From Epithemia pelagica (Eukaryota > Protista > Bacillariophyta), in contig OX337237.1 in the NCBI GenBank assembly GCA_946965045.2, positions 124,001 to 188,000 on the forward strand: a stretch of 64,000 nucleotides of DNA. The letters run 5' to 3'. This document shows, piece after piece, positions 1 through 22,672 of the stretch. The stretch's first letter is position 1; every line of letters starts with the position of its first letter. Made by a program: the position numbers and the translations under genes. Below the pieces are notes generated by a model, which saw only the letters and a list, made by a program, of their open reading frames with translations, was not told the DNA's origin and searched no databases.

Positions 1-1321
1 CGACGCTGTCGCCCGACAAACTCCATAACATCGACTATGCACAGGATGCTGGAGTGTACCCCGAGTCTTTCCCATACTATGTACGTGGAAGGGATAGCCT
101 ACGCACGCACATCACCAAGCTATTCAACAGTCGAATCGCCATGTTTGATGGTGGCATGGGTACAATGATTGAAATCCAAAAGTACGGAAGGAACAATCAA
201 CTTGGTGAAACCGAGTTCAGGGGCGAACGCTTCAAGGATTGGACCTGCAACGTCGAGGGCAACAACGATTTGCTGTCAATCACCCAGCCTCAGATCATCC
301 GCAACATCTACCGTGGCTGCTTGGAGGAGGGAGGCTGCGACATCATCGGGACTAACACTTACTTATCAACCACGATCGCCATGGCCGACTACGAGATGGA
401 GGCATACGCGTATGAGTTAAACTACGAGGGAGCCCGTCTTGCCCGTGAGGCCTGTGACGAGGTCACAGCGAAAGACCCAACCAAGCCCCGCTTTGTAGTT
501 GGTACGATCGGTCCAACGAACAAAACTGGATCGATTTCACCCAACTCCGACGATCCTTCCGATCGTAATGTGACCTTCGACGAGTTAGTGGAGGCATACT
601 TTGAACAGGTTGTTGGTCTCGTTGATGGTGGAGTTGACATTTTGATGGTCGAGACCGTGTTCGATACGTTGAACGCAAAGGCCGCTGTTTACGCGATTGG
701 TGAGTTCTTAGAGATGAGCGGATTGGACATCCCTGTCTTTATATCTGTAACTCTTGTGCACGAGTCCGGTCGTACGCTTTCGGGTCAGACCGTCGAGGCA
801 TTCTACGCATCGATCCGTCACGCGAAGCCAATGTGTGTGGGCTTGTACTGCGGTTACGGAGTCTCGCAGATCACCCGGGATGTTGAAAAATTCGCGAAGA
901 CCGCGGAATGCTTCGTTCATGTGTACGCAAACACCAGCCGACCAAACGAAAAAGGCGAATACGATGACACGCCCGAGATGATGGCAGATCATAATGAATT
1001 GCTCTTCAAGAACGGCTTGCTGAATATGGTCGGAGGGTTTTCCACACCTGCTCATCTCAAGGCAATTCGTGAAGTCTCGGAGAAATACGCACCTCGGAAG
1101 CTTCCTGACGTCGGTCGTCCGAAAATGTGGCTGTCCGGCCTGGAAGATTTGGTTGTTGAGGACGTACACAACCATCTTGGATACCCCTTCTTGAATGTAG
1201 GAGAGCGTTGCAACATCTCTGGTTCGATGAGGTTCAAGAAACTCATGATGGCTGGCGATTATGGAACTGCAATGGACATTGCGAGGAAGCAGGTTGTGGA
1301 CGGTGCGCATGTGATTGACAT
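1..1321 (+). pseudogene. METH: Truncated duplicate of the METH 5' region (Hcy-domain repeat 1 plus the start of the pterin domain)
   Basis: Positions 1-1321 match 3337-4657 (offset 3336) with one substitution seen (G319 vs A3655, Cys vs Tyr). Identity stops after ...GTGATTGACAT at 1321. The C-terminal tail of ORF 54..1502 is read-through into transposon sequence. Confidence 0.93.
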
Positions 1322-2077
1322 TGTTGCAAATTCTTTCGCCCACAATATTGGTGGCATCCATCGATCCCATACATCCCATCATGCCCGCATTTTCGTAGTC
1401 CGAAGATCTGGCATCACTGGCGGTTTGGGGAATTGCTACATACATTTTGAAGAGGATAGTGCTTCCAAACTCAATGTAGCGATGAAAAAAAAACAACGGT
1501 GAACTTCACCGCATACTCCTGTACACTCCTCCAAGTCATCAAATGTCCAACCCCTGCCCAAATATCGCAGTGCACCTAGAACCAGTAGTTCAATGGGCGA
1601 TTTGTCCGCAATTTCTTGCTGGAAAGTTTCCCCAGCACCTTCTCTCCAACGGGCAAAAAAGGGAAGATGGGCGTCGTCGTTAACAACGGACAAATGTTGG
1701 AGGAACGCAGCGAATGGTAGTCGAAACCTCAAACGAAACTTGTTGAGAAATTTGGGATCGTCGGGACGAGGGTGAACAACGTAGGTGAGGTACCAGGGGG
1801 ACATCGTCGCAGTCATGGCTACCACATTGCCATTTTCGTCCCGTACAAACATATTCGCATTTGCATCGCGATTCCGGGGAATCGATCCACCCGATGGTTG
1901 CGCAGGGAAATTGTCAACGTCGGTGGAGACTTGAGAATCATCGTTGCAAATGATCGCAGTAGCCGCAGCAACAATATGGGCTTGTTGAGATGCGATCCGA
2001 CGCCTCTTATCAATCCAGTCTTCCTCATCAGCATAACAATCTTCATTGTCAGAATCCGCCATGGTGGACATATACAA
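1322..2077 (-). pseudogene. PIF/Harbinger-type (DDE_Tnp_4-like) transposase, 3'-truncated and frameshifted
   Basis: ORF 1436..2077 has KFRLRFRLP and SPIELLVLGALRYLGRGWTFDDLEE (HTH region). After a +1 shift in the A9 run at 1485-1493 it continues HRYIEFG...GMMGCMGSMDATNI, matching the Harbinger first-Asp motif GxxGxxDxTH. The sequence is cut at the METH junction just after this motif. Confidence 0.8.
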
Positions 2078-3050: not shown

Positions 3051-6000
3051 ATGAACTGCTTGTGCTGTCCCGTCGGAATAGCCACCAACCCGAAGTTTAA
3101 ATTCAGCTTCCAAACCAATCCAGATGTGGCATGTCCACCCTGCCCCAACAAAACTACGACACCTAGCAAGGGTAAAACTATTTACCCAAGGCTTGAATTC
3201 GACTACGACAAAGCCCCACCAAAACCAGCTGTTGAACCACCTTTACCAACTTATGAAGCCGCTCAAAATCATATTCCGAATCCATACCTGAACTCTAAGC
3301 TATCACACGAGAAGATCCTAGCCATTCGTGAGAAATCGACGCTGTCGCCCGACAAACTCCATAACATCGACTATGCACAGGATGCTGGAGTGTACCCCGA
3401 GTCTTTCCCATACTATGTACGTGGAAGGGATAGCCTACGCACGCACATCACCAAGCTATTCAACAGTCGAATCGCCATGTTTGATGGTGGCATGGGTACA
3501 ATGATTGAAATCCAAAAGTACGGAAGGAACAATCAACTTGGTGAAACCGAGTTCAGGGGCGAACGCTTCAAGGATTGGACCTGCAACGTCGAGGGCAACA
3601 ACGATTTGCTGTCAATCACCCAGCCTCAGATCATCCGCAACATCTACCGTGGCTACTTGGAGGAGGGAGGCTGCGACATCATCGGGACTAACACTTACTT
3701 ATCAACCACGATCGCCATGGCCGACTACGAGATGGAGGCATACGCGTATGAGTTAAACTACGAGGGAGCCCGTCTTGCCCGTGAGGCCTGTGACGAGGTC
3801 ACAGCGAAAGACCCAACCAAGCCCCGCTTTGTAGTTGGTACGATCGGTCCAACGAACAAAACTGGATCGATTTCACCCAACTCCGACGATCCTTCCGATC
3901 GTAATGTGACCTTCGACGAGTTAGTGGAGGCATACTTTGAACAGGTTGTTGGTCTCGTTGATGGTGGAGTTGACATTTTGATGGTCGAGACCGTGTTCGA
4001 TACGTTGAACGCAAAGGCCGCTGTTTACGCGATTGGTGAGTTCTTAGAGATGAGCGGATTGGACATCCCTGTCTTTATATCTGTAACTCTTGTGCACGAG
4101 TCCGGTCGTACGCTTTCGGGTCAGACCGTCGAGGCATTCTACGCATCGATCCGTCACGCGAAGCCAATGTGTGTGGGCTTGTACTGCGGTTACGGAGTCT
4201 CGCAGATCACCCGGGATGTTGAAAAATTCGCGAAGACCGCGGAATGCTTCGTTCATGTGTACGCAAACACCAGCCGACCAAACGAAAAAGGCGAATACGA
4301 TGACACGCCCGAGATGATGGCAGATCATAATGAATTGCTCTTCAAGAACGGCTTGCTGAATATGGTCGGAGGGTTTTCCACACCTGCTCATCTCAAGGCA
4401 ATTCGTGAAGTCTCGGAGAAATACGCACCTCGGAAGCTTCCTGACGTCGGTCGTCCGAAAATGTGGCTGTCCGGCCTGGAAGATTTGGTTGTTGAGGACG
4501 TACACAACCATCTTGGATACCCCTTCTTGAATGTAGGAGAGCGTTGCAACATCTCTGGTTCGATGAGGTTCAAGAAACTCATGATGGCTGGCGATTATGG
4601 AACTGCAATGGACATTGCGAGGAAGCAGGTTGTGGACGGTGCGCATGTGATTGACATCAACGTCGATGATGGTATGTTGGACGGTCTCGCGGCAATGCAG
4701 AAGTTTGTCAAGATTGCCGTGACCGAACCAGATGTGTGCAAGGCTCCGTTTATGTTGGATGCATCGAAATTTGAGATTGTTTTAGCTGGGTTGAAATGGT
4801 GTCAAGGCAAGCCAATCATCAATTCGATCTCATTGAAGGTTGGTGAGAAGCTTTTCATGGAACATGCGACATTACTAAAGAAGCACGGGGCAGCTGTGGT
4901 TGTGATGGCGTTTGACGAGGAAGGGCAGGCTGCAACAGAGGAAGACAAGGTTCGCATCTGCAAGCGTTCGTATGACATCTTGGTGGATCGCGTTGGTTTC
5001 CCACCAGAGGACATTGTTTTCGACCCGAACGTTCTTACGATTGGTACGGGCATGGAAGAGCATGCGAATTACGGAGTTGATTTTATCAAAGCCACGAAAC
5101 GCATCAGGGAAATCTGTCCTTACGCAAAGATTAGCGGTGGCATATGGAACTTGTCTTTCGGATTTAGAGGTGTAATGAAGATCCGTGAGTCGATTCACTC
5201 TGTGTTCCTACACCACGCAATTTTAGAGTCAGGAATGGATGTCGGCATCGTCAACGCACATGAGATGATTGGTTACTCTGATATGGAACCAAGTATGAAA
5301 GCTCTTTGTGATAATCTTGTGTTTAACAAGACAGAGGACGCTACTGAGAAAAAGCTTGAGTGTACTACGTATGAACGAAAAGTGATTGAGGCGCGCAAGA
5401 AGAATCTACCGCCTCCTGTTAAACCAAGAAGCCTCATGTTTAACCTCCCCAGGGTGGAATTTGATTACGACAAAATTCCACCAAAACCAGCTACTGAACC
5501 TCCTCTGCCAGTGTACGAGGCAGCGAAGAACCATGTCCCGAACCCATATCTAAATTCGAAATTTACACACGAGAAGATTCTAGCGGTTCGTGCGAAATCA
5601 ACTGTGTCAGCCGAAAAGCTAGCGAAGATTGACCACCCGCAGGATGCAGATCTTTACCCCAAGTCTTTCCCGCACTACGTCAGAGGAAGGGATAGTTTAC
5701 GCAGGTACATTACAGAGCTCTTCCAAACTCGGATTGTCCTGTATGACGGTGGCATGGGTACGAGTATCCAGAACTACGGGAAGAAGCACAGGCTTGAGGA
5801 AGAAGAGTACAGAGGCGAACGCTTCAAGGATTGGACGTGCAATGTCAAAGGCAACAACGACATGTTATCAATCACCCAGCCCCATGTTATTCAAGGAATT
5901 TACCGCGGCTTTCTGGAGGATGGCGGAAGTGATATCATTGGGACGAATACTTTCTCGTCAACAACGATTGCAATGGCTGACTACGATATGGAGCCATATG

Positions 6001-7703
6001 CGTATGAATTGAACTACGAGGGAGCCCGTTTGGCCCGTGAGGTTTGTGACGAGGTCACTGCGAAAGATCCGACGAAGCCCCGCTTCGTCATTGGTGCGAT
6101 CGGTCCAACGAACAGGACAGGATCGATCTCCCCTTCCGTAGAGGATCCATCAGCTCGTAACGTAACTTTCGACGAGTTAGTGGAGACATATTTCGAGCAG
6201 ATTGTAGGCCTCGTTGATGGTGGATGTGACATATTGATGGTGGAAACAATTTTCGATACATTGAATGCTAAGGCCGCCCTGTACTCTGTTGGGGAGTTCC
6301 TTGAGATGAGCGGAGTGGACATTCCTGTGTTTGTGTCTGGTACTCTGGTGGACCAGTCGGGGCGTACACTTTCGGGTCAAACAGGCAACGCATTCTATGC
6401 ATCAATCCGCCACGCGAGGCCCATGTGCGTGGGTCTAAATTGTGCTTTGGGAGCTATACCCATGACGCCCTTTGTGGAAAACTTATCGAAAGCCGCTGAG
6501 TGCTTCGTTCACGTGTACGCCAATGCAGGCCTACCGAATGCAATGGGTGGTTACGATGATACGCCTGAGATGATGGCAGATCAGAATGAGACTTTCTTCA
6601 AGAACGGGTGGCTGAATATGGTCGGAGGGTGCTGTGGTTCTACTCCGGCGCATCTCAAAGAAATTTACCGAAGGGCTGAGAAATATAAACCTAGAAAACT
6701 CCCAGATGTGTGTCGTCCGAAAATGTGGCTGTCCGGTCTGGAAGATTTGGTTGTTGAGGACGTACACAACCATCTTGGATACCCCTTCTTGAATGTAGGA
6801 GAGCGTTCCAACATCGCTGGTTCGATGAAGTTCAAGAAGCTCATGATGGCCGGTGATTATGGAGCTGCAATGGACATTGCGAGGAAGCAGGTTGTGGACG
6901 GTGCGCATGTGATTGACATCAACGTCGATGACGGTATGTTGGACGGTCTCGCGGCAATGCAGAAGTTTGTCAAGATTGCCGTGACCGAACCAGATGTGTG
7001 CAAGGCTCCGTTTATGTTGGATGCATCGAAATTTGAGATTGTTTTAGCTGGGTTGAAATGGTGTCAAGGCAAGCCAATCATCAATTCGATCTCATTGAAG
7101 GTTGGTGAGAAGCTTTTCATGGAACAAGCGACCCTGTTAAGGAAACATGGAGCTGCTGTGGTTGTGATGGCGTTTGACGAGGAAGGGCAGGCTGCAACAG
7201 AGGAAGACAAGGTTCGCATCTGCAAGCGTTCGTATGACATCTTGGTGGATCACGTTGGTTTCCCACCAGAGGACATTGTTTTCGACCCGAACGTTCTTAC
7301 GATTGGTACGGGCATGGAAGAGCATGCGAATTACGGAGTTGATTTTATCAAAGCTACGAGACGCATCAAGGAAATCTGTCCTTACGCAAAGATTAGTGGT
7401 GGCATATCGAACTTGTCGTTTGGATTTAGAGGTGTGACGAAGGTCCGTGAGTCGATTCACTCTGTGTTCCTACACCACGCAATTTTAGAGTCAGGAATGG
7501 ATGTCGGCATCGTCAACGCGAAAGAGATGTTAGCGTTGTCAGAGATTGAACCGGAAATGCTAAAAGCTTGCGACGATCTCGTGTTCAACAAGACAGAGGA
7601 AGCTACTGAGAAAATGCTCGAGGTTACACAAAAAGAGAGATTGGCAATGGAAGAGAGAAAGAAAGGTGGTGGTGCCAAGGCAGTCAAGAAAACATCCTGG
7701 CGT
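3051..7703 (+). CDS. METH: Cobalamin-dependent methionine synthase, 5' part: (Hcy-pterin)x2 up to the start of the cap domain, interrupted by a transposon
   Basis: Motifs YDGGMGT, GNND.LSITQP, TNTFSST, ETIFDTLNAKAA, GLNCALG, PNAMGGYD-like, GGCCGSTP, GERSNIAGS, IDINVDDGMLDG and ISGGISNLSFGFRG. Two repeats are offset by 2262 nt. The frame stays open to ...TGG CGT (W-R) at 7703. Confidence 0.96.
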
Positions 7704-7990
7704 CACTGCAAGTCATTTCCACATTGATTAAAGTTTTCTCAACCGAATATAATTAAGTCAATCGATTTCCAATTGACTAACTCAAGCCACACTTCCAAGT
7801 CCGACTATTCTGTACTAAGAACTGGATAAATATTAATCAATTTAACATCAACCGATCAATTTCTTAGCCAATACGTCCAACTGACTGAAACTTAAGTCAA
7901 TACTTGTCAACTGTCCAAAAATTTAATCAATACACATCAACCGAGTTAAACTTTTTTACCCGCGGAAACTTTAATCAGTCCTTTTCAAAC
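7704..7990. repeat. Left TIR and AT-rich subterminal repeats
   Basis: TIR at 7704-7715; TCAACCGA at 7739, 7848 and 7937, plus related AGTCAAT motifs. Confidence 0.8.
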
Positions 7991-8256
7991 TGTTCTAATG
8001 TCTTACACGTTTTTTTTGTCTCTCTCTCTCTCTCTCTCTCTCTCATATTATGTGTGTGTGTGGCCCGCGACAGACACACACACTATATATAGACACACAC
8101 AGCACATCGTCACAGAGCACTCTCACTTTTTTCTCATCTCTCTCTCTCTCGTCCTCACACGAAGACAAAATTTCGAGAGAGACGAGATAAAGACTGAGAG
8201 AGATTGGAAAGACACTTTTAATTCATATAGATTCATACAATATTGCTTCGACGTTC

Positions 8257-9288
8257 CTAATTCTCTGAATTCTCCTTTTGTGTTAAGTCAAAAATAAGGT
8301 GATGGTAGTCTCGCTTACGATCGTTTTTGCCCGAACCAGCCTCAGTCATCCTTTTTCCGTATAACGAAGCAACGAATGACAAGTCATCGTGTGTACCAAA
8401 TCGGAGAACACCTCCTCTGTATGACAATTTGATTGGGTTACTAGATAACGCCAAACCGGTTGTTTGGAATGATTCTTGAAGCGTGACAGGATGATAATCA
8501 CAATCCGACATGAAGTTTGCAAGGGTATATATATACTGAATACATTCCACTGGAGTGTGTCCTATCTTCAAAGACAAATCATCTTCATCCAATACACCCG
8601 ATTCACTTTGTTTCTTTACAATCTTGAGTACAAACTTTCGAAGTCTATACAATCCCACCCAAATATTCTGATGTCGGCATCGTCTTTGAAAAATAAGATT
8701 TCCAGGCTGCTTGTAACTTGGATGCTTGTTAACGAAGTACATCGAGACCGTGGTTGGCAGAGGATCAAGTTGATGTTTCGTTTTTTCCACATAGGAATAA
8801 ATCACGTGATGCCAGAATCTCGCAAAATATACATTGTGCATTCCTTGCGCCCATGAATGCTCTGTCCTTTTCAACTCTTCAAGAGTGAATACAAAGGTTG
8901 GGAATAAGACCTTGATTTCTTCATCTGGTTTTTCTCCAGATATCCAACGTAACTCCGTAGATTCATACAGTTCCTCGTTCATTGATCCACAGCCATCTTG
9001 AATTTTTGCGTGGTTATGCTTTGGGGGCTTTGGATGCCAGCTCAAACGTTTTGTGGGGAACAGTGGTAGGAAAAGCCGTAACCGAATAGTTGTAGCCGCC
9101 ACGTCAGGATCTTCGTCCTCATCTTGTTGTCTTTCCTCAAGTCGAGCGATAGTTATTGCTTTAGAGTCTTCCTGGTTGCGTAATTGGATTGCAACAAATG
9201 ATCCGATTCTCAAGGTGTCCATTAATGTCCAATCGAAATATGGCACTTGATTGACATAAACGGTTTCTGTATATGGCGAAGACGACAT
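8257..9288 (-). CDS. Transposon cargo ORF (~343 aa), BAH-domain-like N-terminal half
   Basis: Open ORF with ATG at 9288. The pattern IGSFVAI...TIARLEE...IRLRLFL...EELYES...IKV...NVYFARF follows the BAH strand order (by eye only). Confidence 0.55.
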   Translation of the reverse strand: MSSSPYTETVYVNQVPYFDWTLMDTLRIGSFVAIQLRNQEDSKAITIARLEERQQDEDEDPDVAATTIRLRLFLPLFPTKRLSWHPKPPKHNHAKIQDGCGSMNEELYESTELRWISGEKPDEEIKVLFPTFVFTLEELKRTEHSWAQGMHNVYFARFWHHVIYSYVEKTKHQLDPLPTTVSMYFVNKHPSYKQPGNLIFQRRCRHQNIWVGLYRLRKFVLKIVKKQSESGVLDEDDLSLKIGHTPVECIQYIYTLANFMSDCDYHPVTLQESFQTTGLALSSNPIKLSYRGGVLRFGTHDDLSFVASLYGKRMTEAGSGKNDRKRDYHHLIFDLTQKENSEN

Positions 9289-9790
9289 GGTCAACCAAGA
9301 CTTTTACTCTAACAGAAGGACTCCAAACGACTTCGTTTACACGTTTACCATGGCGCGATGATTATGTGTGTGATGTGTACCTCTGTTTTTTCATTCCTGA
9401 CCCATACATACATGCTTCTCGACTCTCTCTCATCTTTTCTCTCTCTTCAGTCGTTTTCCCACATCCGATGTGCCAATTCGAAAAATTTTGGGTAACCGTC
9501 TCCTAGATATCCTACCACTAATTACCCTCATGCGCGCCTACGATAAGTTTTTTCAAAATCATTTAAAGAAATATAACCGACAAGAATTGTCGTAAACCTC
9601 TATGTACTTTTTGCAACAAATGCATCGACTTCTCGATATTTTGTTACTTTCGAATATGACATAGAATATTATTCCAATTTATATGATATAACACCTTAGT
9701 ACTAATACTTTTCAGTAGAGCAAATTATGTACTCTACCAGATTCTCGTTCTACCAAACGCCTAGTTTTTCATATCCAAACATGTTTTTTA

Positions 9791-11419
9791 ATGTATTTAA
9801 CTAAATACTACTCCCGTGTATTATGTTTCAAATGGCTTACTTGGTCTTGTTATCGCGTGCCGATTACACGACCAATTTTTCGATTGGCCATTGTCTCACT
9901 TTTTTCTGTTGTTTCACAATCGCTCATTTTTTACCCTGTAACGGAGAATTGGACGTATATATTATGCTTCCATTTTCATGCACATGGACTCCACATGGTC
10001 GACAATTTCGCAAACAATTGGGGTGCTTCATATGTCCTTCTGGACCGTACCAGGCGATCCCATAAGCGCAGCGTTGTGGATGTATACAACAACGACGACA
10101 GTTTGTCAGAAATCGAGCTACGATCCATCATTGACAGTACAACACAAGGTTATTTCAGTCTCGAAAAACTTACGCCTAACGGATCCGATGCTAATTTGTT
10201 TGCAATCAGCAGCCTCAGTAATGGTAACAGCAACGGAGTTCTCGTTGGTTGTGGAAGTTATGTGGCGGGGGATTTAGGACCATTACAAACATGGTCCACG
10301 GCTGATTTTCGGTTAGACGACGGACCCTCATTTATCTCCCAACCTGACACTGATCAGGTATCAAACTCTGCAAGATTTCGGACAATCGCCCTACCTTACT
10401 GCATAGAAGGTATTATGTCACAGAGAGTACAGCAATCATACGAAGACTTATGTTCTCATCTCATACACAAACGATGTGTGTACCAACATTCCATTGGTCA
10501 ACCGGTAACCGTGCTATTTCTCGAACTGATGCTTGCTTCGAACGGATGCACCTTGAGTGACAGGTTTCTCAGTTGTCTCGGAAAACTATCGATGCATCAT
10601 TCGTTTGGCATTATTGTCGACGAGATTCTAACGGGGGCTCGGAACGATTGCATGTTGATGACTATGCAAGCCCCCAAATTGTTTGCAGAACAAGTTTCCT
10701 ACGTAACACTTGGCAAATTTTGTAACTGTGGAATTGTATTGACGGGGAAACAACATGACCTCAAACTCGACTCAGAAAAGAGACTCTTGAATGCCAGGGG
10801 GGTGACAACTGCATTGCAATGCTCGATTCCGCTACCATTCTTTCGACAGGTACAAAGACTTCTTCATACCATTCCAGCTCGCCGTCGTAAGTGCATCTCC
10901 AACTTCCAAACACTAGCCGAGAAAGACTGTTGGGGTATTGGATTAATCATATTCATACCTCGACGTTGTACCGGTGCGAGGAATGGTACGGCCAACAGAC
11001 TGCTTCCGTTATTGGATGACGTCCCGGCCGATAGCCTGCGGTCAACTCCCGAACCATCTTGGACTCGTCGGCAAGTTAACAACAAAACTATGTCTTCCGT
11101 ATTGAAATGGGCGAACTCGGTGTGTTTCTTACAGGAGAGTATCTCCTTCCAGTCCGAACTTCCATGTTTGTACCATATGATAAACCACTTGGTCGAACAT
11201 CGATTCTCCGAAGGTTGGGTAACTTCAGCAGATTTACATGTCAGTGTGACTCGCCACGTGCATGGATGTGAAAATGCTTCAATGCGATTGACAACAAACG
11301 TGCTCCGATGCCTTGAAAAGGCTGGCTACATAAAGAAGCAGCTTAAAACTCATCGACGTTTACAGGGATGGTCCATTTTGATGGAACGTCTGGACTATCA
11401 TTTCATTCATCACTGTTAA
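9791..11419 (+). CDS. Class-III aminotransferase-fold protein with a C-terminal winged-helix-like domain (likely start ATG 9995, ~474 aa)
   Basis: In order: PNGSDANLFAI (cf. SGSEANEAA), GSYVAG (cf. xYHG), LELMLASNG (cf. EPIQGEGG), FLSCLGKLSMHHSFGIIVDEILTGAR (cf. LIxDEVQTGxGR), YVTLGK (PLP Lys), WGIGL (cf. RGxGL). The C-terminus has NVLRCLEKAGYIKK...RRLQGW. Confidence 0.75.
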   Translation: MYLTKYYSRVLCFKWLTWSCYRVPITRPIFRLAIVSLFSVVSQSLIFYPVTENWTYILCFHFHAHGLHMVDNFANNWGASYVLLDRTRRSHKRSVVDVYNNDDSLSEIELRSIIDSTTQGYFSLEKLTPNGSDANLFAISSLSNGNSNGVLVGCGSYVAGDLGPLQTWSTADFRLDDGPSFISQPDTDQVSNSARFRTIALPYCIEGIMSQRVQQSYEDLCSHLIHKRCVYQHSIGQPVTVLFLELMLASNGCTLSDRFLSCLGKLSMHHSFGIIVDEILTGARNDCMLMTMQAPKLFAEQVSYVTLGKFCNCGIVLTGKQHDLKLDSEKRLLNARGVTTALQCSIPLPFFRQVQRLLHTIPARRRKCISNFQTLAEKDCWGIGLIIFIPRRCTGARNGTANRLLPLLDDVPADSLRSTPEPSWTRRQVNNKTMSSVLKWANSVCFLQESISFQSELPCLYHMINHLVEHRFSEGWVTSADLHVSVTRHVHGCENASMRLTTNVLRCLEKAGYIKKQLKTHRRLQGWSILMERLDYHFIHHC

Positions 11420-11428
11420 TTATATAAT

Positions 11429-14400
11429 CTACATAGGAAACAACACTTCGTCCATTTCTGGGACAGAGAACTCTCCGTCTGACATCCTCTCTCTCCACAG
11501 GTGACCGACTGCGTAGTACTTGTTCATAAACTTACCAGAGTGTTTGGAAAGTTGCGGCAGTAACAGCAATATTTCCTCCATGACATCTTCTTTCACTTTC
11601 GTAATAGACTCGTATAGCATGCATTGTTCTTCTATTGTAATCGGAGCAGTCCAACAACGAGTAGTTGTCCATTCCCCCTTACTGTCGTCGAATGATATAC
11701 GGACAAGCTTAACTAGACGTCTTGTGTTACCCCTTTCTTCACCAATCGGTCGAAAAGGAAGATAGACTGATCCATCCTTTCCTAATATTGCGCAGAGAAT
11801 GGAATTATCACGACAATCCTCTTCCATGGTTTGGCGACTCTTGAATATCTTCACGAGCGACTCTGCGTCCCTTGTTTGTTTAGTCACTCCGTCTTCTTCG
11901 TCCAAACGTCCCATCATCCAATTAAGTGTATCATGTTGATACAACTTTCGCAGTGTGATGGTATTCCAATCAGCCGTCGCCCTTTTGATGCTAAGGAGCG
12001 GCTTAACCTGTTGTATCTTCCTTTCTCCAGCAAAACCGCCTTCCCAGTGTAAAATTGCCGGTCCCATGGTTGCATGGGACGAAGCGCATGCCAAGATACC
12101 TAAGGAATTGGACTTTACGAAATTTGGATTCCGTTTCTGACGGTCTGAACGGAAAAGGATTTCATCCAATTCAACCATACAATCCAGATATTGCAGAATG
12201 TAATCGTACATTCCGTCGATAACCTTCGTTTTGCTCATAATCCGTCCAAAGGCAGAGGCCATGGCATTCACAAACCGAGCAACACATAACCACTCTTGTT
12301 TGTATTCGCTGTCGTTTTGCATTAATCGTTGGTCCATTAACGCCGGAACACTCAAAACAAACTTCCAAATTCTAGCTCCCAAAAGATAATTCTCGGACAC
12401 CCATGTCCCAGTCCCCCAGGAGGAAGTTGAAAGAGGCTGGGCACAAAAGTACTTCGTAGCTCTGATACCTCGAATGCCGGTCAGAAACTTGTTTGCTTCC
12501 TTGCCAAAGGGAGCCAATTTGTTATATTTCCCCATCCACTTAGAGATCATATCGATATTGCTCTTCACATGCCCAAGGAACAACATGTGCATGGGAGCAT
12601 AATGGCATTTCGCGAGAGATCGTACATCATTCCAGCACACAGGCAGTGTAATCTGATCACTTCCGGCAACACATTCTCTGTAGATTGAGTCAATGATCTT
12701 ATTGGTACATCCACATGTCTTCAAATAGGAAGTAAAATTGCCCTTTGTCCACATCATTTGGTTTTGTCGTCCTCCGGGTTGTCGGGTCTTGGCATTATGA
12801 CAGGCAAAAACAACGGCAGACTTGAGCCAATCGACACACAATCGTACTGTTTGTAAATATATGCGTTTCTCAGTTTTTTTTTGTCGCTTTCTGCGTTTCC
12901 GACCAGTCCCAATGGAATTTTCGACGGTCACTGTGACAGGTGTTTCCTGATCTATTTCGTCATTATTTCGCGTGTCAGGAACATCTTCTATATTATACCA
13001 AAGATCTCTGAATTTTGGAGGGATTGGAGCGCCCGTGCGTATGTCGAACTTTTGTGGGTATTCTGCCGGGGCCAGAAATACCAACTTCGGATCCTCTAGT
13101 GACCAATCAGAGCAGATTCTACAGTTTGGCGAACGCCCGTCCTCTGGAATAGAATATTGATGTTGCTTGATTCGTTGTTTTCGCTTCTTCCGACATTCCT
13201 CGCATGATGGAAGATGGTTTATGCGACAGCTTCCATCCACATGGGTCGCATAACCCCAACATGATGAATAGGTACCGTTATGGTCCCCAAGTTGAAAGAT
13301 GGTAGTCCTTTCGGGTCTATCGACTGAGATCAATAACTTATCTATAACAATCTTGACAATCCGTTTCATCCCTCCATGATAAACTCTTAATCCAGTTGAT
13401 GACAATTCTTGTAGCTCTTGTGTCAAGCATTCTTCGATTCCCGAATGATCATCACCTTTACTAGCAAGGGACATGAAATAGGTATGCCTTCCATTGTGTT
13501 CTTCTAAAGTCGGAGGACAAATGGTGAATGTATTGCACCAAACCTGGTTACGTGAGGATTTTGTGTTATTTGGATCAAAATCATCCCTCCACTCACGTAA
13601 CCAGAGGTACATGATGAATTCATCGTCTACATCTGATTCAATACTCAACTGTTTGGCTTGCATCCGCATCAAGAGTTCCTTGGCATGTGGTGTTGCCGAC
13701 ACACTCGGGATTTCTTCTTTATCACCAATTTGTAACTTCGTGTAGAAATCGTAATCGTCAAATGAGACTGCCTTACCCAATTCATTGGCAAGCACATCCG
13801 ATAACTTCACATAGGAATGTGTTCCGTCAGCGGAAGTCTTGGGGACAGGATGGGGTAGGTTCGGCATAATGGCATGTTTTCCAGTGAGAAAGAATCGATC
13901 GAAATCATCTTTCGTAGTTGGAAGACGAATAGTTCGAAAAATTGACAACTCTTTGTTGCCATTATTGCCTGCTGTGGCAAGGATGTCGCTCAAAATCTTC
14001 TTTTGGGGATCCGACAGCTGGATGAGTAGCGATGATAACTGTAAACAGAATCGTGCTTCTTCCTTAGTCACTTGCTCCGGATTAACATTGAAAGCCTTTC
14101 CTGTTAAGAATCGGATTCCCATTCCCTTACACTTATTTTCGTTCAGAAGAAAGTCTGGTGTCGTGGAGGATGCGTCGAATCCCAACTGGAAGAACTCCGG
14201 TTTTGTTGGCATTTGGTGTTGAATCACAACATCTTCGGTGATTTCTGGAATATCCATTTTTTCATGATCATTTCCCAAATGGTCATTCGGGTTACCCAGC
14301 ATTCCATCATGTGTGGAATCTTCGGTCAGCCGTTCCTGTTCCATCAATTTCCTTTGATGCTGAACACTGGTAGCGTGGCGTTGGATGTATTTCCACTGGG

Positions 14401-14671
14401 CTATATATCCTGCAGATTTCCGGCAAGTTGCTGCACCCCTGATACACAGACGGCAACAAAAGAATGTTTTTGCTGCAAGTGAACATGAATTGACAGTATT
14501 TTGGCACACTCCTTCGTACAGCAGACCCTGCATATTTGGACTCGCTTGTTTCGAAAGAATACATCGTGTTATCCGATTGCATTCTCGACAGGGAATATTC
14601 AGTTCAGGAGAAGTCATGACAAGTATGTAATGGAGAAGGACTTGTTGCGTCTCCTTCGGTAAAGCACTCAA
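11429..14671 (-). CDS. CACTA/CMC-type DDE transposase (~1060-1080 aa)
   Basis: REWRDDFDPNNT, SVDRPER, HNGTYSSCW, APMHMLFLGHVK and HWEGGFAGERKI motifs, with N-terminal CxxC clusters. The ORF is intact and lies between CACTG TIRs. Confidence 0.85.
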   Translation of the reverse strand: MSALPKETQQVLLHYILVMTSPELNIPCRECNRITRCILSKQASPNMQGLLYEGVCQNTVNSCSLAAKTFFCCRLCIRGAATCRKSAGYIAQWKYIQRHATSVQHQRKLMEQERLTEDSTHDGMLGNPNDHLGNDHEKMDIPEITEDVVIQHQMPTKPEFFQLGFDASSTTPDFLLNENKCKGMGIRFLTGKAFNVNPEQVTKEEARFCLQLSSLLIQLSDPQKKILSDILATAGNNGNKELSIFRTIRLPTTKDDFDRFFLTGKHAIMPNLPHPVPKTSADGTHSYVKLSDVLANELGKAVSFDDYDFYTKLQIGDKEEIPSVSATPHAKELLMRMQAKQLSIESDVDDEFIMYLWLREWRDDFDPNNTKSSRNQVWCNTFTICPPTLEEHNGRHTYFMSLASKGDDHSGIEECLTQELQELSSTGLRVYHGGMKRIVKIVIDKLLISVDRPERTTIFQLGDHNGTYSSCWGYATHVDGSCRINHLPSCEECRKKRKQRIKQHQYSIPEDGRSPNCRICSDWSLEDPKLVFLAPAEYPQKFDIRTGAPIPPKFRDLWYNIEDVPDTRNNDEIDQETPVTVTVENSIGTGRKRRKRQKKTEKRIYLQTVRLCVDWLKSAVVFACHNAKTRQPGGRQNQMMWTKGNFTSYLKTCGCTNKIIDSIYRECVAGSDQITLPVCWNDVRSLAKCHYAPMHMLFLGHVKSNIDMISKWMGKYNKLAPFGKEANKFLTGIRGIRATKYFCAQPLSTSSWGTGTWVSENYLLGARIWKFVLSVPALMDQRLMQNDSEYKQEWLCVARFVNAMASAFGRIMSKTKVIDGMYDYILQYLDCMVELDEILFRSDRQKRNPNFVKSNSLGILACASSHATMGPAILHWEGGFAGERKIQQVKPLLSIKRATADWNTITLRKLYQHDTLNWMMGRLDEEDGVTKQTRDAESLVKIFKSRQTMEEDCRDNSILCAILGKDGSVYLPFRPIGEERGNTRRLVKLVRISFDDSKGEWTTTRCWTAPITIEEQCMLYESITKVKEDVMEEILLLLPQLSKHSGKFMNKYYAVGHLWRERMSDGEFSVPEMDEVLFPM

Positions 14672-15355
14672 ATGTATAGATTACCGCTTTTGACAACTCC
14701 ATTGTGGGTCCTTCATTTTTTCTCTCGGACGCACGTCTCCATCCGAAGTGAGAAGCAAAAGATACACCAGTCCCAGTACGACCAAGAACTATCTAATTAA
14801 TATTGTTCCCATATTCAAATCTAATACCGAATAATCAAGTTTCTTCTAAATACGGCTAAAAACAATGTCCTATCAGATACCGCGTCCTAATACATATAAA
14901 TTAAGACGTGTCAAGACGACATCCCAGTAAAACCACAAAAAGAAATAGATAGGTAATCCTGTCGGTTGGAGCCATTCATTTTAAAATTACAGGTGACCCG
15001 GCGCGTTATGTGGATTCCCTCGTCCTTCCAAAACACAACAAGAGTGTGTGTGTGTGTGTTTGTGTGTAATGCATGGACGACAGCAATATGAGACTGGAGA
15101 CAATAAAAGAGATCGAGAGAAAGGACAGAGATGACAAAAGAATGATGTCAACATTCAATTACATTCATAAAAAGAAAGAAAGATATTTGGAAGTCCTAAT
15201 AGATAGTTTTCTGATTTGGATACAGAGTAAATGGTAAGCATCAACCACAACCATCTATAACTTGCCATTACGTATTAAGATTATGGACTAATAATCTTGG
15301 GCTTTTGTTTCTGTACGACAAATGACAGTCCATCTTTCGATCGATTAATCGGAGT

Positions 15356-18108
15356 TTGCCATGTCGCAACTCTGATTTGGCAAGTGTCAATGAACTTGAA
15401 CCTACTGTCGCTACTGAAGGGACCAATGCTCGTTTTACCACTTTGGGAAATAGGAGCAATAACCCAACATACTCTCTCGAAGGCAACATGACACGTATTA
15501 CGACGAACATCCCTGGTATTCATTCACAAGCGAGACCGCAAGAGACAGTCAATACGCAGAACATTAACAGTACGCAAAACTCCAGAGTCCTACTGGAATA
15601 TCCGCGTAACTTTTTCCATCAACAAACGGGTGCCGGCCCCTCTACACCAGAACAAGCAGCCAGATTCTGGATGTACAGGAAATCTCGTCGAACGGATGGG
15701 CTTGCCGATACCGAGGAGCAACCGGACGGAGAAGCAATGCTTCAAGAAATAAAGGATATAAGAGAAAGTCTGCGTACTTTCATTCTCCAATCTTATCAAG
15801 AAGGAATTCAACAACGTGCAAAAGAAATGAACATTACAATACCGGGTAAAGCGTCGCATCCTGTGGTTATTCAAGATTTCCGAACTATTTTGAATGGATT
15901 AGAAAGCACCAAGGAAAACCAAATGATGGTATATGAACTCGTCCATCAGTTCCACAAAGACAGGCATTGGTTAGCGGATGCGATCGATCGTTGGTTTGAT
16001 AGAGAGGGTATGGCTTTAGCACCACTGCAGAAACCCAAGTTTGTTGACGGCAAAAGAACACGCATATGCCCCACCGACCGTGGAGGTTTCTCGGCCGTCG
16101 CTCGTTCCGCAAAGTCGCAGGTAGTCGGTGGTTTGATGGCTCCAATGTTGCGAAATGCTGGTTGGAGTGTGTCGCTCACGAAAGGACAGTCGAACAAAAA
16201 CAATTACGAACACAAGGTACGATACAACCAGTCACAGTCATTCTATGTTGTAGTCAGGGAGACGGAGGTAAGTACTTGCCGTACGAGTTCAATGATATGT
16301 ATGAAAGTACTTACTATGTTCGGTATAACAATTTGGTGAAAAGGAGAATGAACAACGAGAAATCGAAGTTGATAGTGCAAGCCCAGACTTTGAAAGAGCA
16401 AGTCATATATTCACCCAGGCAATTGGTGTGAACATTGACGCAGAATGTGTTCGCATGTTGTGGGCAACATGTTTTGTTCCACGTCCAAGAAATAATACAA
16501 ACCCCGAAATAACGGGCCGAGAATTGGTGGTTCAACGAAATCCAGCCGAGGTGTCAGCGTTAACAGAGCAAGAGATGGATGGGAATGTCCAAGCGCAGAG
16601 TGAAAACAGGAAATCTGTTGTTCAAGAAGAAGTGGTTGCAACTGTTGGTATGATGCACAGGACATATGATACAGACCGACCTGAAAATGCAGTGGACTCA
16701 AGCAAATCTATATTGGTCAATGAGAGTAATAACGGACAACATCCAAATGGTACAACTGTACCATTGGGAATTGTGGGAACACAAGAGTCGGGTGACGAAG
16801 AAACAGAAAGAGAAGGAAGTGGACAACAAGAAACCGATTCTGTTGCATCAAAAGCACTATTCGAGGAAGCACTAATTATGGAACGGAACGCACAATTGAA
16901 CATGACTGGAAATATAGAGATGCAAACAGCAGGATCAACAGATCATAGACGAAACAATGAGTCTCAAGGGAGCCGTGAAGATGGAATAGAAGAGAAAGAG
17001 AATCAATGTCCGAGTGGTAATCAGATTGATCAAGAGATTAATGAAAGTGTACAGCATGAGGGACGGTCTCCGTTGAGAAAGAAAGAACAGCACGGGCAAG
17101 TTGTAATAAATGAAAGTGCTGGGTGTATTCAAATGAAAAGGAACACGAAAACGAATGAGGATGACGCTCGACCATCTGTTGAAGAACATCTCAAAGATAC
17201 GGATTATGGAGATGAGAACAGTGTCATACACGATGGTGCGGAAGACAATGTGGAACGTCCAACGAAGGTAAAGGAAGTTCTTCAACAGCAGGATGTTGCT
17301 ATGTCTACTAACACAGGAGTGAACGAATGCTCATCACAGAAAAGTGATGAGAGCACAAATGCTGGTATACTAAGGCAAACACAAGAAGACTTGGGCCAAA
17401 TGTCTCTAGTAACACAACAAGTATCGGTTGTGTCAAGGAGTGAAGCAGAAGAGAAAACAGAGTGTTCCAAGGAGGTCGTTAGAAACCATAACGTGAAAGG
17501 GACGACTATTGCAGAAGAGAAAAAGGTATGTAATGACATCATGTCTTTCGATTGTAATGTGAGAGATTGAACTAACGATAAATGTATGAAATGATTGTTT
17601 TGGTGAATGATAATGGAAAAGGCTGCCAGTCCTAGAAATAAAAAGAGGAAGGTAAGATATGAAATGGATGATGAGTTGATCACGATGAATGTTATGATAG
17701 CTAAAAAACCATCTGTCCTTGTGGTTACAGGAAATGGATAAGTCTGGGGTTAAGAAGACCTCAGGGATGCGGTGTAACAAGAAGTGTGACGATAAGAAGT
17801 GCAAACATAAGGAGCTGAGTTTGTTTATGCGGCAGGATACCCCGGGTTATTTCACAAACAGTTATTATGAGATGAATAAGGGATGGCCGTCCAGATGCAT
17901 GGAATGTAACGAGAAATTTGGCGAGGATGGGAAAAAGGTTAATCAAAGGAATCCAGTGATGGCCTGTCGGAATGCTTGTATTCCTACACATTCATGTACT
18001 CATGCGTATTGTCATGAGTGCTTCTGCAAATTGATGGTAAAGGAAATGGAGAAAGAAACGGGAGGACAACGATCAATTAGACGAAAACGTACACCAAAGG
18101 AAAGGTGA
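15356..18108 (+). CDS. Multi-exon transposon cargo gene: N-terminal globular region, long acidic low-complexity region, C-terminal Cys/His zinc finger
   Basis: ORFs 15356..16339, 16428..17570 and 17719..18108 can be joined by candidate introns: GTAAGT donor at 16268 with an in-frame AG at 16343, donors at 17526 and ~17652, acceptor at 17730. The finger reads CMEC...CRNAC...CTHAYCHEC. Exon boundaries are partly inferred. Confidence 0.6.
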
Positions 18109-18339
18109 GCGAAAGATTGATGGTGGTGGCAAAAGATTGTGTGTGTGTGTTTTGGTATACGTAAAATATAAACAAAACTTATATGTCAGCAGGCGGTTAT
18201 GAAGTATATAGCGTTCTGAGAGGAGAAAAAAGAGAAACATCATGAGACGACGACGAGAGAGAGAAAGTGATGAGAGAGATGAGAGAGACGAAAATTAAAA
18301 GTCACGGTTGAACTGACTTACGAGAGAGAAAAAATATAT

Positions 18340-18649
18340 TTAGACAGTTGCCGGGAGAAGAATAATATAATAGAGTCAGTTGATATAACCTGTCTAACTG
18401 AATATGTAGGAGATGGAATTTAAAAATAGTTGGTGAAACTGACTTAGTCGGGCAGTTGATAAAACTATGGTAACTGAGTAAATAATCAGAGCTGATATGG
18501 AACTGTTTAGGTGATTAGAGAATTGGATAAGAGAAAATCTGAACTGACTAATGTAAGTTGGGGGGATTGATGACGTGATAATTTTACACAGTCGATAACA
18601 ATTGATTAAGTTAAACACCGGCTTTTCAGTTGAATGTTGACTTGCAGTG
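18340..18649. repeat. Right subterminal repeats and TIR
   Basis: TCAGTTGA (reverse complement of TCAACTGA) at 18376 and 18626, GCAGTTGA near 18452, and the TIR at 18638-18649. Confidence 0.8.
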
Positions 18650-18651
18650 GT

Positions 18652-20554
18652 GACTTCGAGTGCAAGAAACGTCTTGAGCACGCTCTTGTCAATGGTATTT
18701 CCGAGTTCGTGGAGAAAGATACAGAGGAAGCACGGGTTTCTGTGGCTCGCCCTCTTGAAGTTATCGAGGGACCCCTCATGGATGGTATGAACGTAGTTGG
18801 TGACCTGTTTGGTGCCGGGAAAATGTTTTTGCCTCAGGTGATTAAGTCTGCTCGTGTGATGAAGAAGGCAGTGGCGTACTTGCTTCCATTTATGGAGGAA
18901 GAGAAGAAAAAGGCAATGATAGAGCAAGGGCTAGATCCAGCTGAGTTTGATGAGAATGATTCGTCGAACTATGCCGGGAAAGTACTCATGGCCACCGTGA
19001 AGGGAGACGTTCACGATATTGGTAAGAATATTGTGTCCGTGGTGTTGGGTTGCAACAATTTCAAAGTGTACGACATTGGTGTCATGGTTACATGCGAGAA
19101 GATTTTGGAGGCTGCCAAAGAATATGATGTTGATGTAATTGGTCTCTCTGGACTGATCACACCATCCCTTGATGAAATGGTGGTAGTTGCAAAAGAGATG
19201 CAAAAAGGAGGATTCAAGCAACCTCTTCTGATTGGAGGTGCCACTACATCCAAGATGCATACTGCTGTCAAGGTATCTCCCAATTTTGCCAGTATAGATC
19301 ACCCTGTCATTCATGTCTTGGATGCAAGTCGTTCCGTGACTGTTGTAAGTTCTCTGCTCTCAGATAACAAGGCAGAGTTTGTCGAAGAGATCCTTGAAGA
19401 GTACGAAGAAATGCGCGAGGATTATTACGCCGGTCTGGAGGATCGTAACTTCCTATCGTTCGATGAAGCGAAGGAGCAAAAACTCGCGATCGACTTCAGT
19501 GAGAGGCCGCCAGCCCCGGCACCCAAAAAGCTCGGTCTGACGGTGATCGATACGGTGAAAATCGCAGATGTGGTGCCTTATATTGATTGGGTATGTACCT
19601 CCGCTCGGGATGACGCGCTCGTCGAGTGACTGCAATCATCCTCATCACGAATCTCTTTTCATTTCTTCTCCTCGGTTTTTCCTTTAGAATCCATTCTTCC
19701 AGACTTGGGAGTTGCGGGGCCGGTACCCGAATCGTGGTTATCCGAAGATTTTCAACGACGAGACTGTCGGCAGCGAGGCCAAGAAACTCTTCGACGACGC
19801 TCAGAAGATGATGCACCAGATCATTGCGGATGGCAGCATGACGCTGAAGGGAGTTGTGGGCCTTTTCCCGGCGAATCGTAGCGAGGACGGAGAGGACGTG
19901 CACGTGTACGAAACAGAGGAAGACCGAGAGGCCGGCAATCCGATCACCACCTTCTGCATGTTGCGTCAGCAAGCGGAGAAGGAATCAGACAGTCCGTACT
20001 ACTCTCAGGCCGACTTCATTGCACCGGCGGGTCATAAAGATTACATGGGCATGTTCGCCGTTTCCACCTTCGGTTGCGAGGCCTTGGTCACCAAGTATGA
20101 GGCCGAAAACGACGACTTCTCGAAGATCATGGCGCAGGCACTGGCAGACCGTTTCGTGGAAGCATTTGCGGAATATCTGCATCGTGACATTCGTTTGAAC
20201 TTGTGGGGATACGCCGCGGACGAAACACTGGATGAATCCGATCTACTTAAGATCAAGTACGATGGTATCCGTCCAGCGCCTGGATATCCCTCACAGCCCG
20301 ATCACACCGAGAAGAGGACAATGTGGGATCTGATCAAGGCCAGTGAGTTGGCAGGTATCGAGCTATCCGAATCGTTGAGCATGATGCCGGCGAGTTCCGT
20401 GTCGGCTTTGGTCTTCGCCCATCCGGACTCGGAGTACTTCGCCGTTGGCCAGGTGGGCAAGGACCAGGTGGTGAACTACACCGAACGGAAGAAGATGGAT
20501 CTCGAGCTTTGCGAGCGTTGGTTGTCCCCGATTTTGAATTACGAGCGAGATTAG
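18652..20554 (+). CDS. METH: METH 3' part: cap, cobalamin-binding and AdoMet reactivation domains; exons 18652..19590 and 19688..20554
   Basis: [38 protein letters not shown] (DxHxxG), [11 protein letters not shown] and [14 protein letters not shown]. The GT..AG intron 19591-19687 joins YIDW|NPFFQTW. Confidence 0.96.
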
Positions 20555-20873
20555 TAACGTATGAAAAATTTGGATTCTCTATTTGTGATACTGTGATAGA
20601 CACCCAAGATACGAATAGAGGACATACCAGAAGTCAGTCAACAGTCGACAAGCCTGCGATCCCGGACACTCGCCTTTTCTCTCTCTTGTACATTTGCTTG
20701 AGAGGAAGGCATTTATCGCATCGCAGAGCGCGCCAACCGAACGAGGCCGTTGGTCCTTCTACCTCACAAAAGGGGACAATGCGATAACGTTCACCAAAAG
20801 CGCAAAGCGCGCAATCCATCCGTCGATCGCTCCTCGACCTTGTACCCTCGACACTGGTGATTCCAGCACCAGA

Positions 20874-22672
20874 ATGAGCTCAAACATGGATGGCAATGAC
20901 CTTATGAGGTCAAGTATAGGCTCGGACTTCTTGACTCCCCAAAGGGATTCGAACAACATGAATCCAATGAGTACATGCAAGAGATCTGAAATGGATCACG
21001 TGGACCTTGCCAGCGAAAGAACGAACACAGACACGAGTGATGGCCAAAGAACGACATGGCAAACCTCAAATTCATGGCCTCCTCTAAAGGATGGAGGGCG
21101 TTCCGGACATGCGATAGTGACAGTCTCGGTCGGTGACAACAAGGATCATTTGGTTGTCATTGGTGGATGGGTTCAGGCGACTAAAAGACGTAAGGTATGC
21201 TCTGCGTCGGTTGCGATCATGGATATTCCAACGGACGAACTGACTACGGCCCGACACTGGAAGGAGGCACCTCCCATGAATGAAGCACGGGCAACCTTTT
21301 GTGCAGTTTCGTGTCGCTCCAAAATTTATGCTATTGGTGGGATGGGTGAGGAAAGAGCACTCAATTCCATTGAATATATCAATATCGCAGATCTTCTTAA
21401 GCACAAGAAACGAACTTCAATGGGATTGGAAACAAAAACGTGCTGGCAAAAATCGTCTTCTCAGCTGAAGGTTGAAAGAGCGGGATGTTCCGCTGCCGTG
21501 ATAGAAAACCGTTACATTGTGGTTGTGGGGGGTTACTGCTATCACAGCACTTTGATTCCCAGCGTTGACATTGTGGACACAAACAACCCCGATCACCCAG
21601 TTGTGAAAAACGTGTCTTTCTCGCTGGAGCTTCGTGTACCACGTGCGTCCAAGTGTCGTGGCGGTGGAAACCACAGTGTATGTGATTGGTGGGTTATTCG
21701 TGAAAGGTGGTGACAACGAATCTGAATCTAGTTTGGACTCTATGGAATATGGAATGCATAGAGTTCAACCTGGATCAAATATTGGACCCCATGGAGAAAG
21801 AGAATCAAGGGGCAATTGATGACAACACAAATTCGTTTCCCCAAATCACGTCATGGAAAGTTCATTCTATGAAGCTCAGCGTTGCTCGCTATAATGCCGC
21901 TGCGATTGTCGTAGACAAAAACATTGTGGTTGCCGGGGGCAAGGGTTGCGATGAATACGCATAATGATCGGGTCTCCAAATTGCCAGACATGAAAATCGG
22001 AAGAAATGGCCAGTTTCTTACCAATCTCCCTAGCAATGGCCTACTGATCTCAGTGAGCGGTGCGAAGAATGACACTTCGACGGAAGTACTGCCTTTCTTG
22101 CGTCCCTCCAAACGGCAGAGTAATCAAGGTCCCTCGGTACGTTTTCATGCTTTGTCTTTCTTGTTTTCCGTCTGTGTCGTCAGTTGTATATACTCTCATC
22201 AATGATTGCTTGCCTGTCTGGACGAAAACAACAGCAGAATATCAACAAAAAACCGCGACGACGGGCCACGAAACGCAAAGCTGCTCCCTTACAACCGACC
22301 CGTTTGTCACGACTCAAAGAAGAAAAGAAGGAGAAAGAACAACACTTTCATCGAGAGATGAATGGCCGATTAAAAATTCTGGACAGCCAGAAATGCCAAT
22401 ACCTGTCCACTCGTGTGGAAGAATTGGAACAAAAGGATCGCAAACGTGTGCAAGACCTTGAAGTGTTGAAGCAAACCAATCGTGAGCTATCTAATAAGAA
22501 TGAAATGTTGACCAATGAAAACAATGAGTTGAAAAAACTGAATCAGGCACTTTCGGATGATGTCAAATGGCATAAGCAAACGATGCAAATGTGGATGCAA
22601 ACGACGCGTAGCAATCAAGACACCGGGGACTTTCCCAATCGTTCTGGAATACCGAAAAGACCCGACCCTTAA
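20874..22672 (+). pseudogene. Kelch-repeat + coiled-coil protein with three frameshifts
   Basis: Kelch motifs GGRSGHA, MNEARATFCAV, IYAIGG and IVVAGG are spread over three reading frames. Shifts occur near 21648, at the ATGGAAT tandem duplication (21742-21755) and near 21950. A candidate intron begins at 22137 and a coiled-coil exon runs to 22672. Confidence 0.8.

Follow-up and report, generated by a model that had tools for sequence, protein, structure and literature searches.

Can a large transposon that has landed in a coding exon leave the messenger RNA again through splice signals carried in its own ends? The question is raised by a locus of the diatom Epithemia pelagica, where a DNA transposon of almost 11 kb lies inside an exon of a gene for cobalamin-dependent methionine synthase (METH). 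The window, the whole stretch of 64,000 nucleotides that was analysed (G000:C10:124001-188000), is part of a 60.5-Mb genome in 23 contigs; coordinates given without a contig name are positions in this window. An earlier note on this DNA had claimed that the inverted repeats of the element contain splice signals that would remove it from the METH mRNA in frame. The signals and the frame are there, and the idea has a precedent in plants, but no sign was found that the signals are used or have been under selection. The insertion allele is probably null or nearly null, and is sheltered by intact copies of the gene.

The insertion in the METH gene

The host gene encodes a METH of the long stramenopile type, ca. 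2100–2150 amino acids in length, with two Hcy-plus-pterin modules. This doubled architecture is widespread in stramenopiles, with homologs of ca. 2100 amino acids in Nitzschia, Epithemia, Aureococcus and Hondaea, and the precomputed Pfam order in the homologs is PF02574, PF00809, PF02607, PF02310, PF02965. All of the Hcy, pterin, cap/B12 and activation modules expected of a METH are present in the window gene, as are the motifs GGCCG, DVHDIG and RPAPGY. Its single native intron is confirmed by continuity of the frame (VVPYIDW/NPFFQTW).

The insertion lies exactly at a module boundary of the protein (Table 1). Read directly, the left junction is ggcGT followed by CACTGCAAGTCAtttcc, and the right junction is gaatgtTGACTTGCAGTG followed by GTgacttc. 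The terminal repeat of 12 bp is perfect, and the window contains no exact match to it other than the two terminal copies. Excision of the element together with one GT restores TGG CGT GAC TTC GAG (WRDFE). Three other complete elements with the same 12-bp ends were found in the genome, at C6:585690-596607 (flanked by TA/TA), C2:6257663-6276891 (TA/TA) and C11:285832-295726 (AA/AA). The target-site duplication (TSD) is thus 2 bp in all four complete elements (GT, TA, TA, AA); a 3-bp TSD or a longer end repeat was ruled out against the three other copies. Canonical plant CACTA elements make a 3-bp TSD, and 2 bp is the Mirage/Plavaka-like variety. The C2 sibling spans 19.2 kb as opposed to the usual ca. 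10.9 kb, and probably carries a nested insertion or extra cargo.

An assembly artefact was also ruled out. A separate public contig of 753 kb has the same truncated open reading frame (ORF), P0002, which ends in residues encoded by the repeat.

Besides the transposase ORF, the element holds three further gene-sized groups of ORFs. Those on the METH sense strand are at 9791–11419, 15356–17570 and 17719–18108. A probable short intron (17526–17700, plus strand; AAG/GTATGT ... ATGATAG) lies between the element ORFs 16428–17570 and 17719–18108, and shares its donor hexamer with the METH intron.

Table 1. Features of the METH locus and of the inserted element, in window coordinates
Feature	Position	Strand	Description
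METH coding part 5' of the insertion	3051..7703	+	1551 codons; two Hcy plus pterin modules; C-terminus ...KKTSWR
Left TSD copy, GT	7702..7703	.	last two bases of codon CGT
DNA transposon, autonomous, CACTG-type (CMC/CMCT clade)	7704..18649	.	10,946 bp, inside METH exon
Left terminal inverted repeat, CACTGCAAGTCA	7704..7715	+	exact 12-mer match; same 12-mer ends sibling elements
Putative 5' splice site CAA/GTCATT	7712..7717	+	in left repeat
TGA reached by METH read-through into the element	7725..7727	+	protein ends ...WRHCKSFPH (stop); 1558-aa product = P0002
Transposase ORF	11429..14671	-	1080 aa; antisense to METH
Competing acceptor, CTTTTCAG	18623..18629	+	AG 18628–18629, 18 nt upstream of repeat AG
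ATG in frame with the downstream METH exon	18634..18636	+	331-aa ORF (18634–19629) with cap and B12-binding domains, up to the native intron
Right terminal inverted repeat, TGACTTGCAGTG	18638..18649	+	exact reverse complement of left
Putative 3' splice site AG (TTGCAG/TG)	18646..18647	+	in right repeat
Right TSD copy, GT	18650..18651	.	
METH coding part 3' of the insertion	18652..19590	+	starts DFECKKRLE; cap and B12-binding domains, DVHDIG intact
METH native intron (the only one in the gene)	19591..19687	+	97 nt; GTATGT ... long pyrimidine tract (ca. 45 nt pyrimidine-rich tail) ... TTTAG
METH last exon	19688..20554	+	activation domain, RPAPGY intact; stop codon 20552–20554

Intact copies of METH

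An allele with an empty site is present on another public contig. The ORF P0122 (1876 amino acids) is collinear with both METH pieces that flank the element and differs from them at 33 of 1876 residues (98% identity). At the protein level its site is uninterrupted and has no footprint. Because P0122 is collinear, nearly identical and free of a footprint, the insertion is the derived state, and is either polymorphic or heterozygous. The two alleles can be separated by single nucleotide polymorphisms, for example His vs Asp at the tenth codon past the insertion site.

A second METH locus is found on contig 2 (C2:ca. 2855500-2861400). This paralog is 80% identical, has an uninterrupted frame of 2158 amino acids, and reads KKTSWR/DLEPKIRLE at the site of the insertion. 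The parts that were read keep GGCCG twice, DVHDIG and RPAPGY; of the two METH loci, on C10 and C2, only the contig-2 copy has GGCCG in both Hcy modules. At the position of the native intron of the window gene, the paralog reads straight through without a stop.

The B12-independent methionine synthase METE (PF01717) was not found in the genome. METH activity is presumably essential, and the organism appears to be dependent on METH and hence on vitamin B12. With no PF01717 protein to take over, METH function presumably comes from the intact copies. Since an empty-site allele and an intact paralog exist, splicing of the element is unnecessary to explain how the insertion is tolerated.

Two further observations concern the history of the gene. 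Window positions 1–1499 (together with P0121) hold a truncated upstream copy of the 5' part of METH, 595 amino acids with the same MNCLCC... start and nearly identical to 3051–4766. It departs abruptly after ...GAHVIDI at ca. 1432 into unrelated sequence, and has the appearance of a tandem segmental duplication of 3.3 kb or of a rearrangement breakpoint. Between the window allele and P0122, identical substitutions (R/K, K/Q, V/A) occur at equivalent sites of both tandem modules (codons 524–528 and 1278–1282), which suggests that in each METH allele the two Hcy/pterin modules have undergone gene conversion with each other.

Putative splice signals in the ends of the element

The earlier note placed a GT at 7712–7713 within the left repeat and an AG at 18646–18647 within the right repeat, and a direct reading finds both. 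As it had also calculated, splicing from one to the other would leave 8 + 2 nucleotides of the element and 2 of the TSD, 12 in total, and the product TGG CGT CAC TGC AAT GGT GAC TTC GAG (W-R-H-C-N-G-D-F-E) contains no stop. Given a perfect 12-bp repeat and a 2-bp TSD, this arithmetic is indeed independent of orientation and site. Checked by hand, the scar (CACTGCAA-TG-NN) is open in all three phases, save that a TSD starting with A gives TGA in one phase. Two features of the maize En/Spm a2-m1 type, GT and AG inside the termini and a reading frame that is kept after removal, are present here.

The quality of the signals is poor. The donor CAA/GTCATT matches 6 of the 9 positions of the general consensus CAG/GTAAGT, with mismatches at −1, +3 and +5. 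A diatom splice-site consensus was sought in the literature, which yielded figures for the length and density of introns alone: in the model diatom Phaeodactylum they average 142 bp, with 0.7 introns per gene (PMC5859163). A genome-specific donor/acceptor matrix was attempted from pairs of long open frames in the window, with output far too ambiguous for use, and the local reference is the single homology-verified METH intron. The implied intron of 10,936 nt is ca. 110 times as long as that 97-nt intron. The caveats that the note attached to its own proposal, a weak donor and a very long intron, are sound.

The note had described T-rich sequence upstream of the repeat AG. The run in question, CTTTTC (18621–18626), is the sole pyrimidine run at the right end; it is followed at once by another AG (18628–18629) and does not directly serve the AG of the repeat. 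The 18 nt between the two AG dinucleotides are purine-rich (GTTGAATGTTGACTTGC). Joining the 7712 donor to the competing AG gives CAC TGC AAT TGA, which ends in a stop codon. Under the general rule of 3' splice-site choice, the spliceosome would take the first suitable AG and so produce this stop. The 3' ends of the sense-strand genes of the element would also be expected to terminate transcripts that read through from METH.

The AG is not an independent observation, as each CACTG terminus is CAGTG on the opposite strand. The chance that a GT falls at one of the 2–3 in-frame positions of a repeat of ca. 12 nt is, by our own estimate, ca. 12–18% of families. Because the AG is intrinsic to the terminus and an in-frame GT is expected this often, the coincidence of GT and AG is not statistically remarkable.

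Variation of the donor G among related elements

Ends of sibling elements were identified by an unbiased scan (at most 2 mismatches) beside transposase paralogs, and by a genome-wide pattern search. The transposases of the sibling lineages share 52–62% identity with one another; with a more distant pair the value is 40%. Across all sibling ends recovered, positions 1–7, 10 and 11 of the end repeat never vary. Position 9, the G of the GT, varies more than any other position of the repeat and has three states. It is G at both ends (G / G) of the elements on C10, C6, C2 and C11, G / A on C3, C / A on C7 and A / A on C8; among single ends, it is C at C17:75867 and C6:503978, and A at C16 and C11:232419. 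The C7 and C8 elements have no GT donor at either end, yet have full-length, stop-free transposase frames. At every verified end the base at +5 after the GT position is T or A, never G.

The AAAT variant of the end has 24 matches in the genome vs 2 for a reversed control, while the AAGT form has 21 vs 6; the AAAT variant is no rarer than the AAGT form. Of all bases in the terminus the donor G is under the weakest constraint, whereas a splice site under selection would be expected to show the reverse. The strongly over-represented end variant CACTGCAAATCR (24 vs 2 in the control) occurs for instance at G000:C8:757458-767101 and C7:231756-242355. Most of its matches are not beside the transposase paralogs that were found, and these may be further lineages or defective copies of the superfamily.

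Copy number and genomic context of the family

The subfamily of the window element is single-copy: 300 bp from each of its ends match nothing else in the genome. Among 98 degenerate-terminus matches genome-wide, no inverted pair is closer than 9.6 kb, with the exception of one 1.7-kb pair whose second member has no element-like sequence. As there are no closely spaced inverted pairs of ends, the family has no miniature, non-autonomous derivatives. Its paired ends lie 9.6–19.2 kb apart, which is not the size of introners, the short, mostly non-autonomous, intron-sized elements that generate introns.

The earlier note had suggested asking whether other copies of the family are tolerated in exons. 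None of the three other complete copies, a small sample, is in a clear exon, and their reconstructed empty sites have only short, unconvincing open frames. Long frames do abut three single ends, but these have a Met a few codons in or look transposon-related, and the three insertions are likely upstream of genes or in other repeats, not in exons. Many related copies present as spliced introns in unrelated genes, a hallmark of introners, were not found in this single-copy subfamily and its three siblings.

A separate observation was made at L053:1515-2813 (G000:C17, right of 3102395), where a Kelch-repeat frame of 433 codons begins immediately at the right-hand boundary of a sibling element and reaches its first Met 35 codons in. 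This frame resembles a Kelch-like ORF at 20619–21710 in the window, just downstream of METH.

The transposase and its clade

The 1080-residue protein encoded in the element has at least 12 paralogs in the genome, with 40–56% identity. It has no Pfam match even at E-values up to 10, the curated profiles Transposase_21 (PF02992) and Plavaka (PF18759) included, and no sequence match among PDB structures. Seven aligned paralogs share the invariant motifs WREWRDDFDP, D451/D463, C490-x2-C493, H690-x4-H695 and SENY with E760. The order of motifs is thus D, D, C(2)C, H(4)H, E, in which the catalytic role of the acidic residues is putative. A D, D, C(2)C, H(3-4)H, E pattern typifies the EnSpm/Mirage/Chapaev/Transib/Plavaka ('CMCT') clade, which is also marked by CA...TG termini and TSDs of 2–5 bp (PMC12730594). 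Both of the latter are seen here: the 2-bp TSD lies in this range, and the perfect 12-bp ends CACTGCAAGTCA / TGACTTGCAGTG, also found on the sibling elements, are of the 5'-CA...TG-3' (CACTR) type. The nearest clusters by language-model comparison, at scores of 0.91–0.96, are Plavaka and Transposase_21, which serves as a lead only. We assign the element to the CACTA/Mirage/Plavaka (CMC/CMCT) clade of cut-and-paste transposons, and consider it to be young.

Explanations of the insertion allele

The account that we favour is a loss of function in one copy of the gene. A young CACTG...CAGTG transposon with a 2-bp TSD would have entered the linker before the cap domain, in one allele of one of the two METH loci. 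Transcripts of this allele most likely stop or are truncated inside the element, and their translation would end 8 codons in, at the TGA in Table 1. Methionine synthase would then be supplied by the empty-site allele and the contig-2 paralog. All indirect tests made here point to an incidental pair of cryptic sites and not to a device that is used or selected. The GT and the AG are probably by-products of a terminus that is constrained for transposition, and would make up a latent, weak splice pair of the maize En/Spm kind; if this pair is used, it is probably in a small fraction of transcripts. We infer that splicing is inefficient and that the signals have not been selected.

Several observations weigh against this account. 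The METH frame is fully open on both flanks of the insertion, with DVHDIG and RPAPGY intact, as expected if the insertion is very recent or the gene has continued to function. The 33 allelic differences were polarised against 16 outgroup sequences where a direction could be assigned; derived changes at invariant or near-invariant sites number 10 on the insertion allele (e.g. S699W, C1253S, H1137P) vs 5 on the empty allele, a difference that is not significant and may at best hint at relaxed constraint on the insertion allele. The closest match to U1 within ca. 100 nt of the left end is the donor in the repeat, and hardly any phase of the 12-nt scar contains a stop. Two plant systems also count here. 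The CACTA termini of maize En/Spm can serve as both splice sites, as later papers relate it (Menssen 1990, EMBO J 9:3051, via PMC4219821, PMC8195511, PMC4120734), and the 13-kb CACTA element TgmR* of soybean, in intron 2 of the R MYB gene, is removed together with the host intron (PMC4219821).

The most direct competitor to loss of function is the use of the repeat GT and AG by the spliceosome, giving physiologically relevant amounts of a METH with a four-residue insert (HCNG) ahead of the cap domain. The insert would fall in an interdomain linker between intact flanking frames, the sequence and frame arithmetic hold for any orientation and site, and both maize En/Spm and Tc1 of Caenorhabditis elegans are precedents. 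We nevertheless consider it unlikely, though well short of negligible. The donor is weak at three positions and no copy of the family has a G at +5; the acceptor lacks its own pyrimidine tract and competes with an upstream AG that leads to a stop; and the intron, ca. 110 times the native length, contains sense-strand genes that would be expected to terminate the transcript. The donor G is not conserved among relatives, and given the intact METH copies no rescue is needed. A C-terminal product could instead be made separately, from a transcript that runs outward from the right end of the element, with translation starting at the ATG 16 nt from that end. The gene would then be split into an N-terminal protein of 1558 amino acids (Hcy and pterin) and a protein with the cap, B12 and activation domains, perhaps cooperating in trans. 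MetH is modular and the element sits at a module boundary, the ATG opens a frame of 331 codons to the native intron, and isolated fragments of E. coli MetH reportedly keep partial activities. An outward promoter at the right end is only putative, however, and a frame match has a one-in-three chance of arising by accident, so that we give this possibility very little weight.

Two further interpretations concern the family as a whole. In the boldest, the ends of the family double as 5' and 3' splice sites, any exon insertion in either orientation could leave the mRNA with a constant, stop-free scar of 12 nt, and the element would be an autonomous proto-introner, a living step from ordinary cut-and-paste transposons toward the intron-generating elements of other algae; this is most improbable. 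Equally improbable is the claim that the signals were selected in an autonomous 'introner' that makes its exon insertions harmless through the in-frame scar. It draws on the openness of the scar in nearly all phases and both orientations, and on an exact GT-bearing repeat that is common to several lineages despite transposase identities of ca. 55%. Inverted-repeat DNA-transposon introners also exist, and some autonomous copies generate introns (PMC12130899). What counts against it is that no position of the repeat varies as much as the G of the GT and that intact elements lack GT at both ends, that the donor context has never been improved, that the METH copy is the only one found in a clear exon, and that a single-copy subfamily with no short derivatives shows no amplification.

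Comparison with known systems

The closest likeness is to maize En/Spm: a CACTA-type element in an exon, with both splice sites drawn from its own termini. As in maize, the acceptor AG is that of the ...AGTG end, and few element bases would be left in the mRNA of a slightly altered protein, which is here a prediction. The maize case is reportedly proven by cDNA and complementation, and is said to concern a short (<1 kb) defective element. The METH element, in contrast, is a 10.9-kb autonomous copy with a TSD of 2 bp instead of 3 bp, in a host with introns of ca. 100 nt.

The soybean element TgmR* is also a very large CACTA element, and its removal from the pre-mRNA at a low level gives some gene function. 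Unlike the METH element, it sits in an existing intron and is removed by the splice sites of the host and not by its own ends.

The removal of Tc1 from mutant C. elegans pre-mRNAs is described at second hand (Rushforth and Anderson 1996, via PMC4120734). There, cryptic sites in or near the ends of the transposon splice the bulk of it out of the exon, and the in-frame products can be partly functional, as is proposed for the METH element; Tc1 belongs to a different superfamily, and its removal was shown experimentally. Tc1 is reportedly 1.6 kb long, with several imprecise junctions used.

Introners such as IE1 of Micromonas pusilla (PMC11282704; surveys in PMC12130899 and bioRxiv 10.1101/2022.06.06.494994) also bring splice signals into an exon by way of an inverted-repeat DNA transposon with a TSD. 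The Micromonas introner takes one splice site from the TSD and leaves no scar (PMC11282704). Elements that generate introns are overwhelmingly short and non-autonomous; autonomous ones are rarely tolerated and are presumably selected against in genes (PMC12130899). Introners are typically scarless and number hundreds to thousands of intron copies, whereas the family of the METH element has no short copies and no other copy in a clear exon, and would leave a scar of 12 nt.

Efficient use of the junction would make this the first demonstrated case, outside plants, of an autonomous CACTA-type element that leaves an mRNA via its own termini. It would then bear on the origin of introners from ordinary transposons, with a natural pair of empty and filled alleles at hand. 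As it stands, the locus is mainly a clean case of a very recent, polymorphic exon insertion in a gene of an essential pathway, sheltered by an intact allele and a paralog.

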